Below are positions 12,122-50,646 of a stretch of DNA of 64,000 nt, one piece after another. The DNA is taken from the NCBI GenBank assembly GCA_024704765.1, contig JAKMXF010000312.1, forward strand, positions 62,001 through 126,000. Direction: 5' to 3'. The notes beneath the pieces were generated by a model, which was given only the letters and a program-made list of their open reading frames with translations, had not been told where the DNA came from and ran no database searches. The position numbers and the translations under genes are program-made. Every line of letters starts with the position of its first letter. The stretch's first letter is position 1. The DNA is from Oopsacas minuta. Taxonomy: Eukaryota; Animalia; Porifera.

Positions 12122-12910
12122 CTATACCACCTTCATGCCACCATCCTTATCAGCCATGATAACCAGGATGATTAGCACTAATTCCACAAGCATGAATAGG
12201 AGTATAACAATTAGTTCGAATATTCCGACACCTCCAATCCAGTTGTAATATTCCTCCAGCTGTTCACGGATGAACCTTCCGCATCCTTGTGCTTCAGTTG
12301 CTTCTGCCTCTGTACAGAGGATTACCGTAGAGTTACAACAACCCTGTGGTAGGTAAGACGTGTTGTACCCAGGGTACTCTGCGAAATCTCCTGGACCAGT
12401 TACCCCACAACAACCTACTAAACTTTGTATAGCAATAACTGCGGTTTGTGTCAAGTCAAACTCCTCCATATAGCTCTCATTAACGGCACTGTTAAGGACT
12501 GGGATTAAATTATTAGCTACGTTATTACTGAACACGAATGCCACAACTACACCAGCAAGTGCCAGCAGGAACACGACAACAAATGCGATCAGATGTGCGG
12601 ATAGGAAACACACGGCTATTCCCTTCATGACACCATTCGCCGGACAATATGCTAGATAACTCCCTACAATAGCCGCTACTGTGAATATCACAGCGATCAC
12701 ACCAACAGCAACACATAAGGAGAACCCAACATTGAAGAAGAGGATATTCTCACTTAAATTGCCACTAAAGAATAAATTTAACCTAACCAAGCCTACCACA
12801 CCGATAGCAATTATAATCACCGAAAAGAGGAACCCAAGAATATTAGCGATTATGTTAATAACCGCTAAAAGTATACGTAACGCTGCAAGGAAACCCATTT
12901 TTGCGATCAA
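12122..12910 (-). CDS. Tetraspanin, intronless, 262 aa
   Basis: Four hydrophobic segments; large EC2 with CCG, P..CC and GC motifs. Confidence 0.9.
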   Translation of the reverse strand: MIAKMGFLAALRILLAVINIIANILGFLFSVIIIAIGVVGLVRLNLFFSGNLSENILFFNVGFSLCVAVGVIAVIFTVAAIVGSYLAYCPANGVMKGIAVCFLSAHLIAFVVVFLLALAGVVVAFVFSNNVANNLIPVLNSAVNESYMEEFDLTQTAVIAIQSLVGCCGVTGPGDFAEYPGYNTSYLPQGCCNSTVILCTEAEATEAQGCGRFIREQLEEYYNWIGGVGIFELIVILLFMLVELVLIILVIMADKDGGMKVV

Positions 12911-15536: not shown

Positions 15537-17754
15537 ATGAAGGTATTACTGATAGTGGTTCTTGTATTACTGCCACTTCACACCTACGGTCAGATACCCA
15601 CGGTATGTTCCGATGCGAATAGTTTAGGTAATTCTATTTGTTGTCCTGACACCTCGGATGGTGTGTGTGGAGAATCAGCTGGTCGTGGGGCCTGTGTGTC
15701 ACTGTCCCTCTCAGGTTATGACAGTGGGTCGAGTCATGTGAGGGACAACTGGCCCCATTACTACACCCAGATGTGTAGTTGTAACGGGGGATACGGAGGT
15801 ATTGATTGTAGCAGATGTAAGATAGGCTACTACGGGTCTGATTGTAGCCGGATTGATGTCACCCCTCGGAGAGAAGTTGGGTCATACACCCCTGCAGAAT
15901 GGGACGAATTCAACAGGGTGCTTAGACTGACGCGAGAGTATGATTCAGGGTACCAAGTAGTACTCAAAGAGGAAGTACCAGGAACAGAAATACTGGAGAC
16001 AACTAATGCTAGTCTCTACGGTCTGTACGTATGGATGCATCATTATGCAGCTAAGGACTCACTAGCAAGTACGTTAACACCTTAGTATAGTCAGTTCATG
16101 TTATATCTATAGTTCCAGTTTAGGGACCGTGATAATTAGTTCCATATAACTGATGACATATGTGTAGATATAAGCAGGGTTGAGTGTATGTCTGATTGGT
16201 GTGAAAATTGGCACATCTGGAAGGTAGATCACCACTTGAATTAGAATTATTAATATTTTCACAAATTTGGGATTCTGAAGGGCATAAATAGACCCCCGGT
16301 ACGTACCTCTTGATAGTCCATTTAGATCCAACGGGGCAGGGATTGTAGCCATGACTGCACCCTTCTTTATTAATTTAGTTCTGGTTTAATAGGTTTACCG
16401 GATCTGAGAGATTATGCACATTCGGCTCCAGGATTCACCACATGGCACAGATATCACACCTTGTGGTTTGAGTGGGAAATACAAGGAATGTTGAAACAAA
16501 TGGGAGATCCAAATTATCACACCTTCAGGTTATGAATTATGAATATATGCCCAATAGAATATCAGCTTATGCAAACCCTCATAGAGCGACACAATTGTCA
16601 CTTTTTCTAAGAGATATGTGAATATTTTGCTTAGATATTCTATCATGTCTTAGGTTATTCCACTTTTCACACCTATGCCAATTTTCAAGTTTGTAGCACT
16701 TACCAACACCTCAATAAATAGGAACTAATCGATTAGTTCCTATTTATATTCCATATATTATTAATGTTCTATTTAGGTTCGCATATTGGGATTGGCGCGT
16801 AGAAATACTGAATAGTTCTGGTATCACGACCAATGATCTATTCACAGAGGAGAGAATAGGCGCCACATATAATGTTGGAGGTTACCCCCGGGTGAATGGT
16901 ACAGTTATTGGAGACGGTTGGGACACAATCTGTTGGCTCACCCTATTCGATATTTGTGACCCCAGGAACTCAACCGGTCCTCTTCAGAGGTGTCCCTTCA
17001 CTGGAACAAACCCATGTGACATTTCTAACCCTGACTGGGCTACAATTGCAGATGTAGACAAGGCTTTAAATGAGGACTCGTACGATTTCCCGCCTTATAA
17101 CATTCTGACCATAGGGGGATACAGGGCTGTAGTCGATTTCTTGGTGGGTACTCTATCTCTATCAGAATGTGGGGATGATAGATTGTGTCAGTGTCTGGGA
17201 CTATCAGGGTCTGATACCACCTGTGACTCTCTTGGTGTAACCTTCAAAGCTAATATGCATTCCAAGGTCAGTATTATGTAACTACGTTGATATTCGTAAA
17301 TAATCCTGCCACATTTTATACCATAAGTAGCCACTTTATAGGTGTTAATTGTGTCGCCCTTTAGATCCACTTCATCTTGGGGGTAGGTGATTTAACCTCT
17401 GCACTGACTCTTGAACTAACCAAGAAAGGACACCTTGAGGATGTGGCAGCCTCTCCTAACGATCCTGTCTTCATATTCCATCACTTAACACTTGACTGTA
17501 TGTTTGAGGAATGGATGCAGTCACATCCTGATGAAGGATACCCAACCTTCCCTCTACAGAATCCTGGACACAAGATTGGGGACTATATGGTACCATTTAT
17601 GCCCCTATACACCCAAGGAGACATGTTTGTACCCGGGTCCACCTTTGGGTTTTCTTGTAGTCTCCCTAATATTACTGTCAGCCACGCGACAACATTTTCA
17701 CACCTCAGTTTGTGTGTCATTCTACTCTTCTGTTTATTGACTCTGCTATTGTAA
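15537..17754 (+). CDS. Tyrosinase / tyrosinase-related protein (type-3 copper protein)
   Basis: Exons 15537-16068, 16393-16528, 16777-17266, 17365-17754. Signal peptide, Cys-rich EGF-like region (CSCNGGYGGIDCSRCKIGYYG), CuA (WMHHY, YAHSAPGFTTWHR), YWDW, CuB (MHSKIHF, SPNDPVFIFHH), hydrophobic C-terminus. Confidence 0.92.
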
Positions 17755-20415: not shown

Positions 20416-20910
20416 TTAAGCAGGTATTGTATGACGAATACTACCCAGTATTAATGCTATATACCATCTGTTAAATACCAATAATACTAACTGAATAACA
20501 CACAGGAAAGGCATTAATGATGGAGGTATTAATAATAACCCATATGGGTAAGAGGAGAAAAAATTAACAAAACCACCTATTAACATAATAATATAATAAA
20601 TAAGAATTATGAATTGAGATATACCTGAGATGATTAACAAGCAGAGGCCAATTATCCTGTGTTTCCTCTGTTCCATGAATCCCAAACAAGACCCTATCAT
20701 GGTTACTATTATAGTTATCAAACTGATTATGGTGTTTATTGAATGTCCAAGTACTCCGAATATATAGAAACCGCCACCAAGAAGAAAAAAACCATTGAAG
20801 ACAGCTGCTGTTATATTAATCGCCAGAATATTTAATAAAAACAGCGCATTTATTACCAATGATATTATTCCACATATTAAGAGATGTTTGATGAATCTTA
20901 CTTCTGTCAT
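20416..20910 (-). CDS. Small intronless four-TM protein (copy 1 of a tandem pair)
   Basis: 164-aa hydrophobic ORF; near-identical copy at 21293-21819. Confidence 0.72.
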   Translation of the reverse strand: MTEVRFIKHLLICGIISLVINALFLLNILAINITAAVFNGFFLLGGGFYIFGVLGHSINTIISLITIIVTMIGSCLGFMEQRKHRIIGLCLLIISGISQFIILIYYIIMLIGGFVNFFSSYPYGLLLIPPSLMPFLCVIQLVLLVFNRWYIALILGSIRHTIPA

Positions 20911-21819: not shown

Positions 21820-22485
21820 AATATTATTTTCAGTTTATCTAACATTACAGATAGTATTAGGATATATATTCATACTCAATACATACTCTACCATGTGATA
21901 TATTATTAATCATATCATACATATATCATATTCCAATTGGGATATATGGAACCTCTCCTCTTGTGTTATGATTGTACCTCTATAACAAATAAGTTCTAAC
22001 ACCAATTAGTATGGGGCAGCTATGAACACTAAATTTGCTTCCGCCAGCCTGTATGTATAATTGCATCACACGTACTGTGTGCTTGATGGGTATAGTGAAG
22101 GTGTTTACCGACTTATGTTTGTTGTTGTTGTTGCTGTTGTTGTTGTTGTTGTTGTTAATATTATGTTAGATTTCCCTCTTATAATTAATGAATACTTTCC
22201 TTGTGTACATGTATAATTTCTAACTGTATAGAATTTTAGATTTTCTATGAGTAGAATATGGAATTGGTCTGTATACTCTGGACCAATCGAGCTGTTCGTG
22301 AAGCTAGTTTATTACCACTTTAGTTGTGCTAGAATATAATATCCCCTAGGAGATTATTCTAACAATTCATGGAGTAACCCGTGTAATACAATATTTATCA
22401 TTTCCTTAGTTTAGTATGTAGATCAGATTGCAATAAATATATAATAGAATGGAACTCAAACTTGGGAATATTATCTCAGTGGAAT

Positions 22486-24126
22486 ATGGGTGAAATAGGA
22501 CAGCGATGCTTCGGAAAAGTAATATCTTTTGTATGCTGTAAGTATTGTTCAGCTTTCACTCTTGTGTATGTTTATTCAGCTCTATCTTATCTAGTTGGTA
22601 CAAGTTGTCCTAATGAGAATAAAGGGGTTTGCATTTTCGCGGCGGTTGTGTATTTTATGATTACTCCACTTCCTCTTGTTGTTTCTTGTCTTTCCTGTTG
22701 TGCGTGCTTTGTGTTAATATCTGACAATATCAACAAAAGCTTAACGTGTCTGGGAATTACAAATGTATTCGTAGTTATCCATCTAGTGATGGATATCATC
22801 CTGTTAATAGTGGCACTTAGCTCTAGTGTAAGATCACTAGTTACCAATGTGACGTTGTTGGCTCTGGCATGTTCGATTATTATAAATATTCTGATTTTGA
22901 TATGCTTCGGTCTAAGCTGTGTGGGTCAGTGCGGTAGAAAAATAAAATGTCGAGAGAGACGTTCTGAGTTGCCTTTTGAACGTAGTGAACTACCATTATA
23001 TGCAGAGATACTTGCTAGAGTCCCAGCAAAAAATAAACGTCTACAGAAGCCTACACCCGTTATAACATCGACAAATACACAGAAACCTACACCCGTTATC
23101 AAATCGACATATACACAGAAACATGCTATATGTCCAACACTTATAGAGAAGGACATGTTGTTTTCCAACCAAAACATTGAGAGAGATAATCCTGTAGAGA
23201 TACGTGCTATACAACCGGCATTTCTAGAAAGGGACATATTGTTTTCCAACCAAAACATTGGGAGAGATAATCCTGTAGAGATACATGTTATACAACCGGT
23301 ATATTATGAGATACCTGCTTGGATACCACAAACACTTCCAGACAGTCCTGCTGTCCCTGTTGTTGTAGAATCGGTACATTCAGACAGCCCTGTTGTCCCT
23401 GTTGCTGTAGAATCTGTACTTTCAGACAGTCCTGATCCTGATCCTGTTGTCTCCAAACACCCTAACAGTCCTGTTTATCATACTCCAGACAGTCCTGTTG
23501 TCCCTGTTGCTATAGAATCGGTACATTCAGACAGTCCTGATCCTGATCCTGATCCTGTTGTATCCAAACACCCTAACAGTCCTGTTTATGATATTCCAGA
23601 CAGTCCTGTTTATCATACTCCAGACAGTCCTGTTTATGATATTCCAGACTGTCCTGTTTATCATACTCCAGACAGTCCTGTTGTCCCTGTTGCTGTAGAA
23701 TTGGTACATTCAGACAGTCCTGATCCTGATCCTGATCCTGATCCTGCTGTATCCAAACACCCTAACAGTCCTGTTTATGATATTCCAGACAGTCTTGTTG
23801 TCCCTGTTGCTGTAGAATCGGTACATTCAGACAGTCCTGATCCTGTTGTATCCAAACACCCTAACAGTTCTGTATATGATATTCCAGACAGTCCTGCTGT
23901 CCCTGTTGCTGTAGAATCGGTACATTCAGACAGTCCTGATCCTGTTGTATCCAAACACCCTAACAGTTCTGTATATGATATTCCAGACAGTCTTGTTGTC
24001 CCTGTTGCTGTAGAATCGGTACATTCAGACAGTCCTGATCCTGTTGTATCCAAACACCCTAACAGTTCTGTATATGATATTCCAGACAGTCCTGTTACAG
24101 TTCAACCGTTATCCAAAGGCTTTTAA
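22486..24126 (+). CDS. Four-TM protein with a long Pro/Ser/Asp-rich tandem-repeat C-terminal tail
   Basis: Single ORF (first ATG 22486; ORF track opens at 22462) with four Cys-rich hydrophobic segments and ~340 aa of hydrophilic tail. Confidence 0.75.
   Translation: MGEIGQRCFGKVISFVCCKYCSAFTLVYVYSALSYLVGTSCPNENKGVCIFAAVVYFMITPLPLVVSCLSCCACFVLISDNINKSLTCLGITNVFVVIHLVMDIILLIVALSSSVRSLVTNVTLLALACSIIINILILICFGLSCVGQCGRKIKCRERRSELPFERSELPLYAEILARVPAKNKRLQKPTPVITSTNTQKPTPVIKSTYTQKHAICPTLIEKDMLFSNQNIERDNPVEIRAIQPAFLERDILFSNQNIGRDNPVEIHVIQPVYYEIPAWIPQTLPDSPAVPVVVESVHSDSPVVPVAVESVLSDSPDPDPVVSKHPNSPVYHTPDSPVVPVAIESVHSDSPDPDPDPVVSKHPNSPVYDIPDSPVYHTPDSPVYDIPDCPVYHTPDSPVVPVAVELVHSDSPDPDPDPDPAVSKHPNSPVYDIPDSLVVPVAVESVHSDSPDPVVSKHPNSSVYDIPDSPAVPVAVESVHSDSPDPVVSKHPNSSVYDIPDSLVVPVAVESVHSDSPDPVVSKHPNSSVYDIPDSPVTVQPLSKGF
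23338..24093 (+). repeat. Coding minisatellite (~90-100 bp units plus 21-bp sub-units) encoding PDSP(V/A)VPVAVESVHSDSP(DP)nVVSKHPNS(P/S)VY(D/H)(I/T)
   Basis: Repeated ccagacagtcctg...gtagaatcggtacattcagacagtcctgatcctg...ccaaacaccctaacagt blocks. Confidence 0.95.
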
Positions 24127-24528
24127 TAAATATTATTGTGTTTATTGAATTATGTTTGTTGTTATTATTTGTTATTTATTTATATCATACTAATTATCTC
24201 TGATAATTAGATTAATTGAGAGGTTAACAATTCACTATATTTAATGGATCCAATTTGGTCCAATGGGGTCATAATAAGGGTCTATCATAATTGTACTCTA
24301 ATCGTGTTTATCTTTGGCTAATTTTTCCATTAATTTGAATTCAAATTTGATGTAAAATGCTTTCATAATATAGAATATTCTAGAACAATTTCGCAATAAC
24401 ATTTCCTATAATTCTACCAACTGGATAATCTCCCACTGCTATCCGCTACGTAATGAATACTCAATTTTATTTTAATAATATAAACAGCATATTTACTTAC
24501 AAACACAACAACAACAACAAACAAATAA

Positions 24529-25038
24529 TCACGCTGGTTTTCTGTCATCTCTCTTCCAATCAAAACTCTTACAAATCATACAAATATAGAAACTTCCATA
24601 CCCAAACAGACCGCACTGACACAAACATATTCCTGGGGCTACTGCTACAGGAATATACAACAGAGCATTGCTGACACCCCCCACTATAAATCCAGCTATC
24701 ATCACAACAAAATTGGCGCCAAAGAATAGAAACAATACCGAATTTGTTATGATCAACATTTTGAGTCCAATCTTCCTCACATGGTCCTGATACATGAATC
24801 CAAGCGCCGATCCGATTAGCGTTACGACAGCGAATACGACACTAAACAGGAAGAATGCAATATACACAGCACCCGCTGATAATGTAAAAGGAACCTCTTG
24901 TCCTAACCCTGAATACACGAAGTATAATATAGCTCCTGTAAGGTTCAGTCCCGCTAGCGGCATGAGTAGGAATGAATTTAGCATTATGGATATGATACCA
25001 AACGCTAAGAGGTGTGAAATAACTTGTGTCTCTGCCAT
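24529..25038 (-). CDS. Small intronless four-TM protein, relative of the 20416 gene
   Basis: MAETQVISHLLAFGIISIMLN parallels MTEVRFIKHLLICGIISLVIN; IGSALGFM parallels IGSCLGFM. Confidence 0.75.
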   Translation of the reverse strand: MAETQVISHLLAFGIISIMLNSFLLMPLAGLNLTGAILYFVYSGLGQEVPFTLSAGAVYIAFFLFSVVFAVVTLIGSALGFMYQDHVRKIGLKMLIITNSVLFLFFGANFVVMIAGFIVGGVSNALLYIPVAVAPGICLCQCGLFGYGSFYICMICKSFDWKRDDRKPA

Positions 25039-48079: not shown

Positions 48080-48251
48080 ATTATTTGTTTGTTTGATTCT
48101 TGTAATTAATCACTTTGTGTATACATATATCTCCCTCAACCAATCAATTTACAATCTCAGATAGGTGTTAGAAACCATTTTCCACCCTTAGATTATCATA
48201 TGGCTTCAGAACAATCCATAAACTTTTGTTAATCTAATATTAGTACTGTTG

Positions 48252-50646
48252 ATGGCAACGGAATCTCAAGATTGGAATGCGAATATGAAATTTTGCGCTT
48301 CAAATTCAAACCCATCGCCACAAATATTGGATTGGGACTTAACCAATGATCTCATAGCTTTTGGTTCCAATTGCAATATACACATTCTCAGCCAATCAAA
48401 TGGTAACTTTTCTACCCATCAGGTGTTAACGGGTCATACTTCAAATATCAGCTGTTTGAGATGGTTGAGTTATCCCAATACAAAAACAACAACAACAACA
48501 CCTCTAGTTTTGTTGGTAACTGGTACTACTGGAGGGGGGATCAGGGTGTGGGAGAATTCTCCGCTAAAATGTACACAAACTTTTATTTTAGGCGAGAATT
48601 CTATTAATAGTATCTCTGCTAGGATGACTGGTTTAGTCTCACATTTAATAACAGCTGCTTGTTCAGAAGTTGCTATTTTTAGAAGAGATTTGAAGGTGTC
48701 AAATGCCACTTTTGAGGAAATACACCGAATAGATTTTGGCTACAATTACGTATTAGGTGTTGATATAACATATATTGGAACTGGAACTGAATTGGTTCCA
48801 ATTCTAGCTTGCGGTAGTGATAATGGTAAAGTCCATTTGTATAATATTTCTGATTTGACTAAAATTTGTGATTTGCTTGGACACGAAGATTGGATTAGGA
48901 ATGTTGAATTTTGTGAGACATCTGATGGTCAGTACTTAGCAACCGCTTCTCAGGATTGTTATGTGAGAATATGGCGCCTTAATCTTGTAATTGAGTGTGA
49001 AGAATCAGCTGAGTTGAAGATGAAAGAGATTGTTTTCCACACCTCTTCTAGCTCAGGTAGTAAACAAAAATATATACAAACAAACTAATAAACAAACAAT
49101 TAATACATCTATAGGAGTATTGAAGTCATACAAAATACAGCTAGAGACGGTATTACAATGCCATGAGGACTGGTGCTATAGTGTATCATGGGCTCCTGTT
49201 AGTTCCAGTATTAGTTCCAGTTTAAAACTGTTGACAGCTTCTATGGATCGTACAGTGGCTGTGTGGTCTCCAAGTGGCACAGATGGTGTGTGGGAAGAAT
49301 CGATGCGAGCAGGAGAAGTTGGTGGAAACACTTTAGGATTATACGGAGCTAGATTTGGACCTGGAGGTGTTAAAATTGTGTCGCATGGGTACCAGGGGGC
49401 ACTACACCTCTGGGAATATGTGTCTGATAAATGGGAGGGCAGACCTATAGTAGGAGGACATTTTGGGACTGTCAGTGATTTGAGTTGGTCCCCATCTGGA
49501 AAATATTTCATCTCAGTTTCTTCCGATCAAACTGCAAGACTTTGGGCTGAATGGTGTGAAGAGTGGCATGAATTGGCACGCACTCAAATACATGGATACG
49601 ATCTAGTTAGGTGTTGTGCCATATCTGACACAATGTATGTGTCGGCTGCTGATGAGAAAGTGGTTAGAGTATTTAGCTCACCTCTGACATTCATTGATAA
49701 TTTCAAACACCTAACTAACCAATCAATTTCCAGGCCACTTAATGTGCCACTTGGCGCTAATGTTCCAGCTTTAGGTCTGTCTAACAAAGCTGTTTTTAAT
49801 GTGACACAACAAACAAAAGAAAACACCTTTGATGACTTCAAAAACGCGCCACAATTCACACCTTTCAATCTGTCCTCTCCCCCTTTGGAAGAAACTTTAT
49901 TGCAACACACTTTATGGCCAGAAGAGAGGAAGCTATATGGCCACACCTTTGAAGTGTACGCCCTCGCCACCAGTAGAGATGGCACAATAGTGGCATCCGC
50001 CTGTAAAGCTTCTAAACCAGATCAGGCAGGTGTTATATTGTGGTCGGTTGAGAAGTGGTCTCAAATACAGACACTTTCATTCCATACACTCACCATTTCC
50101 AAATTAGCATTTTCAAATAATTCTCAATTGCTGCTAGCAGTTTCACGTGATAGAACATGGTCGCTATGGAAACGCAATGGAATGCAGTTTGAACTAATTT
50201 CTCATTCAAAACTGTCTGTTATGAAGCATACTAGAATTATATGGGACTGTTCTTGGACCATGGATGATGTTTATTTCGCTACAGGCAGCCGAGATATGAA
50301 AATTATTGTTTGGGGTGAGGTTGTCGATTCAAAATGGGATTGTGTCAGTCAGAAACCATTAACACTTGAAGAGGCGGTTACAGCACTTCAATTTTGTCAT
50401 TTTTCTAAACGACACATTCTTGCAGTTGGCCTTGAAAATGGGAAAATCTTAATTGTAACTTTTTGTGAAGAGACCAAGGATCTGAATATCGTAAAATTTC
50501 TTGATGAGTATCATGCTGCTATGGTAACCTGTATTGCATGGAGACCAGAATCAACAATTGGAATGCATAGAAATTATCAGCTGGCAACTTCTAGTGCAGA
50601 TTATTCAGTTAGAATTTATAATATATCACCTCCAAATATTGTGTGA
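48252..50646 (+). CDS. ELP2: Elongator complex protein 2 (WD40)
   Basis: Exons 48252-49056 and 49115-50646. Motifs GHEDWIR, LATASQDCYVRIW, EVGGNTLG, ELARTQIHGYD, ANVPALGLSNKA, TLWPEERKLYGH. Confidence 0.95.

Follow-up and report, generated by a model that had tools for sequence, protein, structure and literature searches.

An orphan four-helix membrane protein with a tandemly repeated YxxP array in the sponge Oopsacas minuta

The gene and its YxxP array

The stretch analysed here, called the window, comprises 64,000 nucleotides of the glass sponge Oopsacas minuta (contig JAKMXF010000312.1, here C312, positions 62,001 to 126,000 of the forward strand; assembly GCA_024704765.1), and the genome searched was the 61.46-Mb, 365-contig assembly of this species. 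The gene in question lies in an open frame of 554 codons at 22462-24126 on the plus strand. From its first ATG, at 22486, it encodes an intact, single-exon product of 546 amino acids, in which four predicted transmembrane (TM) helices are followed by a long tail with ten YxxP motifs. An entry of the ESM Atlas matched this sequence letter for letter, thus the target protein is a publicly predicted model. Exact-sequence look-ups with the target protein and with P0001 found no record, and hence gave no transcript evidence. Two paralogs, L002 and L003, were present in the genome. We concluded that the locus belongs to a real, undescribed orphan gene family, and that the motif array is exact as it was given in a preliminary description of this DNA.

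That description had placed one YEIP, six YDIP and three YHTP motifs after the fourth TM helix. Translation gave the same set, with YEIP at residue 274, YHTP at 331, 376 and 392, and YDIP at 368, 384, 431, 464, 497 and 530. The ten motifs span nucleotides 23305-24084, from YEIP (23305-23316) to the last YDIP (24073-24084), so the interval 23305-24093 originally assigned brackets the array. All of them lie in the tail, within 260 residues, and proline stands at position +3 of 10 of the 13 tail tyrosines. The 400-residue tail is rich in proline (17.7%), valine (16.7%), serine (13.2%) and aspartate (10.5%). When it was shuffled 20,000 times, YxxP occurred 2.2 times on average and 8 times at most, compared with the 10 observed.

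Tandem Repeats Finder detected nested tandem periods of 24, 42, 48, 99 and 111 bp, every one a multiple of three, and the terminal 3.6 copies of the 99-bp unit were 96% identical. Two further repeat families, of 36 and 81 bp, lie between the membrane part and the array. The excess of YxxP is therefore attributed to tandem duplication and not to ten independent events. The nested in-frame periods, together with the difference between ten motifs here and three in paralog L002, confirm the origin by minisatellite expansion that had been proposed.

To describe what is kept in the motif, 13 copies from two full-length family members were aligned. Tyrosine and the proline at +3 were invariant (13/13), valine at -1 and aspartate at +4 were each found in 11/13, and proline at -2 in only 7/13; position +1 was D, H or E, and position +2 was I or T. 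Because tyrosine and the +3 proline are invariant while the -2 proline is not, the kept core is V-Y-x-x-P-D and not PxY. A PPxY/PxY ligand of WW domains was rejected as the repeated core for the same reason. NPxY was rejected because the asparagine is at -4 instead of -3, and a YxxPhi signal because proline is a poor Phi residue at +3. An aliphatic residue at -1 with proline at +3 is, from peptide-library work, the classical Abl-type substrate and the site type of the Crk, Abl, Nck and RasGAP SH2 domains. A DNA pattern coding for VYDIPD occurred seven times in the genome, six times in the target gene and once in L002, with none elsewhere and none for the reversed control.

The product had also been called a four-TM protein, and the analysis supports a genuine four-helix membrane protein. 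Four hydrophobic segments were found (Table 1), connected by loops of 8-10 residues; the outer loops have 8-9 residues, the loop between TM3 and TM4 has 8, and 11 residues precede the first helix. AlphaFold2, run with an alignment of the three paralogs, returned four long helices and then a tail that was disordered apart from a short helix at YAEIL. This model was of low confidence (mean pLDDT, the predicted local distance difference test score, 53) and was used for secondary structure alone.

The number of lysine and arginine residues directly after TM4 was 5-7 in all three paralogs, versus 0-2 in the two presumed outer loops. Fourteen cysteines were invariant among the three paralogs, and 13 of them (8, 17, 18, 21, 68, 71, 72, 74, 88, 140, 145, 149 and 155) fall on the inner face in a model with both termini inside (N-in/C-in). 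Two cysteines of the outer loop region varied, and loop 1 of paralogs B and C contains an N-glycosylation sequon. The charge distribution, the cysteine belt and the loop-1 sequons favour a cytosolic tail with both termini inside. A topology prediction had been proposed as a check, with a cytosolic tail expected, and the positive-inside charge and the 13 inner cysteines make this the most likely orientation. Tetraspanins and LAT/PAG-type adaptors (for the class, PMC3342071) are palmitoylated at multiple cysteines. By analogy, the belt of the target suggests multiple palmitoylation, for which C140, C145, C149 and C155, flanking the inner end of TM4, are candidate sites.

Table 1. Features of the target gene, in window coordinates
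Feature	Position	Strand	Basis
Complete single-exon coding sequence, 546 amino acids + stop, orphan tetraspan protein	22486..24126	+	Open reading frame listing; ESM Atlas identity; start region kept in paralog L003
Predicted TM helix 1, residues 12-38; invariant Cys17, 18, 21 in inner half	22519..22599	+	Hydrophobicity; AlphaFold2 helix 2-38
Predicted TM helix 2, residues 48-78; invariant block PLP.VVSCLSCCAC	22627..22719	+	Paralog alignment; hydrophobicity; AlphaFold2
Predicted TM helix 3, residues 89-112	22750..22821	+	Hydrophobicity; AlphaFold2
Predicted TM helix 4, residues 121-146	22846..22923	+	Hydrophobicity; AlphaFold2
Conserved juxtamembrane segment, residues 147-192: Cys-x3-Cys-x5-Cys, basic cluster, SELPFERSELP[LS]-YAEI-...KNKRLQKPTPV	22924..23061	+	Three-paralog alignment
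36-bp repeat encoding KPTPVI[KT]STNTQ; 2.2 copies here, ~6 in paralog L002	23043..23122	+	Tandem Repeats Finder; paralog comparison
81-bp repeat, 1.9 copies; 27-residue unit ..L[EI][KR]D[IM]LFSNQNI.RDNPVEI..	23144..23299	+	Tandem Repeats Finder
YxxP array, ten copies of core [V]-Y-[DHE]-[IT]-P-[D]-S-P in nested 24/42/48/99/111-bp in-frame repeats	23305..24093	+	Translation; Tandem Repeats Finder
Non-repeated C-terminal end VTVQPLSKGF; VIVQPLSKGS in paralog L002	24094..24123	+	Paralog comparison
AATAAA hexamer overlapping stop codon, candidate polyadenylation signal (putative function)	24125..24130	+	Sequence reading

Paralogs, homolog searches and evolutionary rates

Paralog L002 (contig C111, L002:892-2007, minus strand) is an open reading frame (ORF) of 371 codons with six KPTPVI.STNTQ units and three YxxP motifs (YEIP, YDIP and YDTP). 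L003 (G000:C148:12504-13079) runs into the contig end after 192 codons, right at the onset of the repetitive tail. Probably the assembly is interrupted there by the repeats, and copy and repeat numbers of the family may be underestimated. The duplication takes in the gene together with about 480 bp on its upstream and about 840 bp on its downstream side. The target and its paralogs have kept the frame, the juxtamembrane segment and the C-terminal end, the sequence of L003 reaching only the start of the tail. The public model of L002, "hypothetical protein LOD99_104" (302 amino acids), begins at an internal methionine and lacks the first two TM helices. Small indels immediately ahead of the start set the extreme N-terminus of L002 apart from that of the window copy. 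About 330 bp upstream of the target start codon, at 22119-22156, there is a (TTG)n microsatellite with 12.7 copies.

Relatives were found only within the Oopsacas genome. A Pfam scan of the 546-residue protein, run together with nine neighbouring membrane ORFs, gave no match for the target. Word-index searches were made with the membrane part and, among proteins of 300-955 amino acids, with the tail; both found only the Oopsacas paralog, and a full HMMER search of a three-paralog profile against 1.84 billion representative proteins gave the same single result. No relative was detected in a scan of JGI metagenomes with back-translated conserved peptides. The ESM Atlas contained no look-alike at a score of at least 0.9, and the rows listed were treated as chance. 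Descent from the neighbouring tetraspanin-like genes was not supported, since BLASTP against the window's other small multi-pass membrane ORFs, eleven in number and including two true tetraspanins, reached a best E of 1.3.

The searched collection includes gene calls from assemblies, probably of other glass sponges, that carry homologs of the downstream neighbour of the target with 67-72% identity. The missing target ortholog there suggests that the family is either very young or very fast-evolving. This neighbour (24529-25038, minus strand) and the ORF on the other side of the target (20416-20910, minus strand) are both small four-helix ORFs, paralogous to one another (34% identity, E 3e-18). 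The 67-72% identical homologs were seen in several ENA and Logan assemblies, where they adjoin nanos-type zinc-finger and NHL-repeat genes and not any relative of the target. The gene contexts there differ from that of the window, and tblastn over the 8-10 kb around these homologs found no target relative.

The best conserved part of the protein is the juxtamembrane segment RRSELPFERSELP[LS]YAEI[LP]AR.PAKNKRLQKPTPV, and its LPxY and YxxI motifs were present in all three paralogs. The proportion of nonsynonymous differences (pN) in this segment was 0.02-0.07, below the proportion of synonymous ones (pS, 0.07-0.10), on few sites and without significance. The distal tail showed the values pN 0.096 and pS 0.043. 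When the membrane domain (22486-22935) of the window copy was compared with L002, pN was 0.147 (48.5/329 sites) versus a pS of 0.024 (2.5/103; Fisher p = 1.4e-4). The noncoding flanks of the same duplicated segment have diverged by 8.5-9.6%, so the membrane domain unexpectedly evolves faster than the flanking noncoding DNA. Its changes fall mostly on the lineage of the window copy and run in both the AT and the GC direction, and AT-biased mutation was therefore rejected as the cause of the nonsynonymous excess. This result probably reflects positive selection on the helices, or at least full relaxation combined with an oddly low synonymous rate.

Elsewhere in the window, consecutive ORFs at 15537-17754 (plus strand) resemble, by eye, exons of a tyrosinase-type copper enzyme, with a Cys-rich signal-peptide start and His-rich motifs. 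Two long overlapping ORFs at 48249-50646 (plus strand) look like one WD40-repeat gene, by eye similar to Elongator subunit 2.

Comparison with known systems and candidate partners

Proteins of the p130Cas/BCAR1/NEDD9 family share with the target a cluster of YxxP motifs in disordered sequence (15 in human, 6 in the demosponge Amphimedon), mostly YDxP with an aliphatic residue at -1 (PMC5043372, PMC8791637). The multivalent phosphorylated YxxP (pYxxP) sites of Cas bind Crk and Nck (PMC8791637), and Amphimedon has a Crk ortholog beside its BCAR1 ortholog with six YxxP (PMC5043372). The target possesses the substrate-type YxxP cluster, and SH3, Serine_rich (PF08824) and CAS_C (PF12026) had no Pfam match. 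It is thus not a member of the Cas family, three of the four defining features being absent. The preliminary description had taken the resemblance as convergence and not kinship, with which the lack of these three domains agrees; the resemblance to p130Cas is convergent at most.

A precedent in design was described in choanoflagellates. The specificity of the Crk SH2 domain for pYxxP is older than animals, and its early partners were proposed to be transmembrane proteins whose cytosolic part carries YxxP repeats (PMC5043372). In Salpingoeca rosetta, PTSG_05573, PTSG_12435 and PTSG_12436 contain 5-10 YxxP, and their peptides were tested against the choanoflagellate Crk SH2 domain (Shigeno-Nakazawa et al. 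2016, PMC5043372). Like the target, these proteins are membrane-integral with 5-10 YxxP in the predicted cytosolic part (PMC5043372). Unlike it, they have extracellular DUF5011 and C2 domains, a comparison made by published description only, whereas the target has a compact four-helix anchor with minimal loops and a recent tandem-repeat array.

The target was also compared with the transmembrane adaptors LAT, PAG/Cbp, NTAL and LIME, which expose very little outside, have cysteines next to the membrane (in LAT and PAG these are palmitoylated) and bear many tyrosine motifs along a lengthy disordered cytosolic tail (PMC2213442, PMC3342071). These motifs are phosphorylated by Src-family kinases and read by SH2 proteins (PMC2213442, PMC3342071), and PAG, for example, has an outer part of 16 residues and a tail of 397 residues with ten tyrosines (PMC2213442). 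The class is, however, single-pass and vertebrate-specific, and its non-repetitive tails carry mixed motif types, whereas the target is four-pass with one motif type multiplied by tandem duplication. A minimal outer part and a long multi-tyrosine tail, predicted from charge to be cytosolic, were found in the target, while the single-pass type III topology of these adaptors was not.

Two four-pass families were considered as well. Synaptophysin has both ends in the cytosol and a disordered tail of tyrosine-based short repeats (PMC7948965). It differs from the target in that its repeat is a Tyr-Gly-rich pentapeptide and not YxxP, in its MARVEL domain, and in its conservation across animals. MARVEL (PF01284) had no Pfam match in the target, and the ESM Atlas gave no named look-alike at a score of at least 0.9. 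Tetraspanins (PF00335) share the four passes and the inner-face cysteines, and two of them lie 10 kb upstream in the window. The target has neither their large second extracellular loop nor a CCG motif, and it gave no match to PF00335 even at E up to 1, whereas the true tetraspanin at 12122-12907 scored 74.5 bits in the same scan. The earlier statement that no tetraspan protein of this design is known was too strong, since synaptophysin has a tyrosine-repeat tail and the choanoflagellate YxxP proteins and PAG are comparable. What is new here is the combination of a cysteine-belted four-helix anchor, one recently multiplied motif type and restriction to a single sponge lineage.

The genome was also searched for proteins that could phosphorylate or read such motifs, and about 60 SH2 and about 100 SH3 matches were obtained genome-wide. 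A Crk-type gene was found on contig C322, with its SH2 domain split over two exons and followed by SH3. The two SH2 exons were searched one by one. For the second, all PDB matches were to CRK/CRKL (E 8.5e-10) and took in the RVSHYII and EFYK.HYLDTT stretches, and matches of the first included Crk among other SH2 domains. A Nck-like adaptor is encoded by an ORF of 334 amino acids on contig C299 with three SH3 domains and then SH2, the SH2 matches including NCK1. Other candidates were a RasGAP N-terminal SH2 domain at locus L017 (E 3.7e-34), a Src-family kinase at locus L006 with SH3 followed by a Src-family SH2, and a FAK FAT domain. The presence of these partner proteins makes docking of SH2 proteins by the target more plausible.

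The Crk-family gene (L041:892-1668, G000:C322:356692-357468) lies near the contig end, and the intron in its SH2 domain is short. A small ORF immediately upstream of the gene (L041:473-724) opens with a hydrophobic poly-cysteine stretch and contains a PPPPY motif. CAS_C, the CAS Serine_rich domain and the Abl F-actin-binding domain were not detected genome-wide, in searches run without a eukaryotic positive control, which leaves their absence unproven. p130Cas may have been lost or strongly diverged in O. minuta. BCAR1, Crk and paxillin are mentioned neither in the text of the Oopsacas genome paper (PMC10280926) nor in the supplements consulted.

A possible SH2-docking platform and its alternatives

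Taken together, these features would fit a lineage-restricted membrane adaptor. Four helices with very short outer loops would anchor the protein with both ends in the cytosol, and the invariant cysteine belt on the inner face would probably bear palmitate. The long disordered tail, built by in-frame tandem duplication, would now offer ten V-Y-[D/H]-[I/T]-P-D-S-P sites. The YxxP sites would be phosphorylated by a tyrosine kinase, of the Src family or another, which may dock on phosphorylated YAEI or YYEI (pYxxI, the type of site bound by the Src SH2 domain). The phosphorylated array could then bring in multiple copies of SH2 proteins with a preference for proline at +3, such as Crk-type, Nck-like and RasGAP proteins. 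The outcome would be a multivalent, membrane-fixed signalling platform with a valency set by repeat number, which would resemble LAT/PAG-type adaptors and the p130Cas substrate domain in function and be kin to neither. We hold this full mechanism tentatively, as the best of the explanations considered and a possibility somewhat short of probable.

A more elaborate version can be drawn. In it, a young orphan tetraspan family would have convergently evolved both a Cas-like substrate domain and a YAEI docking site of the Src-SH2 type, in a sponge that has Crk, Nck, a Src-family kinase and FAK and no detectable p130Cas. The protein would serve as a membrane-fixed Crk/Nck platform of a syncytial animal with repeat-tuned valency, and its helices would be positively selected through the pairing of each paralog with a partner receptor of its own. 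We consider this version as a whole unlikely.

Several observations weigh against the docking function. Its plausible and coherent picture is drawn from motif resemblance, and the array is young: the repeats that hold seven of the ten motifs have a DNA identity of 90-98%, and conservation of the motif may therefore reflect no more than their youth. No purifying selection was detectable on the distal tail, whose pN of 0.096 is near the divergence of the flanks. Paralog L002 has only three motifs, and the repeat number itself could be affected by the assembly, as the third paralog stops at a contig break where the tail begins. No ortholog was found in any other species among the proteins and metagenomes searched. 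The topology is based on sequence rules and a low-confidence model.

Many of these points would be expected if the YxxP array were a by-product of neutral minisatellite expansion, in which case the tail would be a spacer or work by way of different short motifs, for example the Ser-Pro and Thr-Pro pairs that are numerous in it, with no role for tyrosine phosphorylation. The repeats are young (88-98% identical), the distal tail has changed at close to the neutral rate (0.096, compared with 0.085-0.096 in the flanks), motif number differs widely between paralogs (10 versus 3), and long-term retention in orthologs was not seen. Neutral expansion, however, does not readily explain that tyrosine and the +3 proline never change across the 13 copies, not even in the diverged YEIP, YHTP and YDTP, while positions -2, +1 and +2 vary. 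Nor does it account for retention of the motif in a paralog with a difference of about 9% in the flanking DNA, or for a frame that stayed intact through every expansion. We regard a neutral by-product as the main rival, a real possibility only slightly less likely than the docking mechanism. A role as an adaptor of the LAPTM/NDFIP type, in sorting or for a ubiquitin ligase, would shift the function to the juxtamembrane segment: LP[LS]Y would bind Nedd4-type WW domains, YAEI and YYEI would be YxxPhi signals read by clathrin adaptors on the way to endosomes or lysosomes, with only a secondary role for the repeats. Multi-pass proteins with L/PPxY tails include LAPTM4/5 and NDFIP. In the target, LPxY and then YAEI come about 25 residues after TM4. 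No part of the tail is better conserved among the three paralogs, and pN is below pS there, but this signal comes from few sites without reaching significance. As PxY, the repeated SPVY is not retained (proline at -2 in only 7/13 copies), and proline is a poor YxxPhi residue at +3, which leaves the array unexplained. Such a role is compatible both with the docking mechanism and with a neutral by-product, and as the explanation of the protein we consider it unlikely.

Two further explanations would remove the docking function altogether. If the tail faced the outside or a lumen, it would be a proline-rich stalk, possibly O-glycosylated or tyrosine-sulfated, and SH2 docking would be impossible. 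Its richness in proline, serine, valine and aspartate, with acidic residues beside each tyrosine, would suit such a stalk. This orientation would, however, put the 5-7 basic residues right after TM4 outside and the loops with 0-2 inside. The loop-1 sequons of paralogs B and C fit N-in/C-in, and the cysteine belt aligns on one face only in the four-TM N-in/C-in model. We therefore judge an extracellular or lumenal tail very improbable. Equally little credence is given to a non-functional ORF, that is, a decaying duplicate with a minisatellite open by chance. A dN/dS (ratio of nonsynonymous to synonymous rates) of at least 1 in the membrane domain, the lack of homologs outside O. minuta and the N-terminally truncated public model of paralog B would agree with decay. 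On the other side, a frame of 546 codons stands open in DNA of 39% GC and was kept in three diverged copies, and the juxtamembrane segment, the C-terminal end and the 14 invariant cysteines are conserved. A membrane-domain pN of 0.147, above the flank divergence of about 0.09, is moreover not produced by neutral decay.

If the tyrosines are unused, the target would be a plain orphan membrane protein with a repetitive tail. If they are phosphorylated and read by the Crk or Nck protein of the sponge, the gene would represent a very recent, de novo multivalent phosphotyrosine scaffold that arose by repeat expansion on a membrane anchor. It would then support the published idea that Crk adaptors were first coupled to membrane proteins with YxxP repeats, before or beside p130Cas (PMC5043372), and would show the ease with which such scaffolds arise. 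With three and ten sites, the paralogs would in that case form a natural series of valencies, on which ideas about multivalency and membrane-associated phase separation could be tried.

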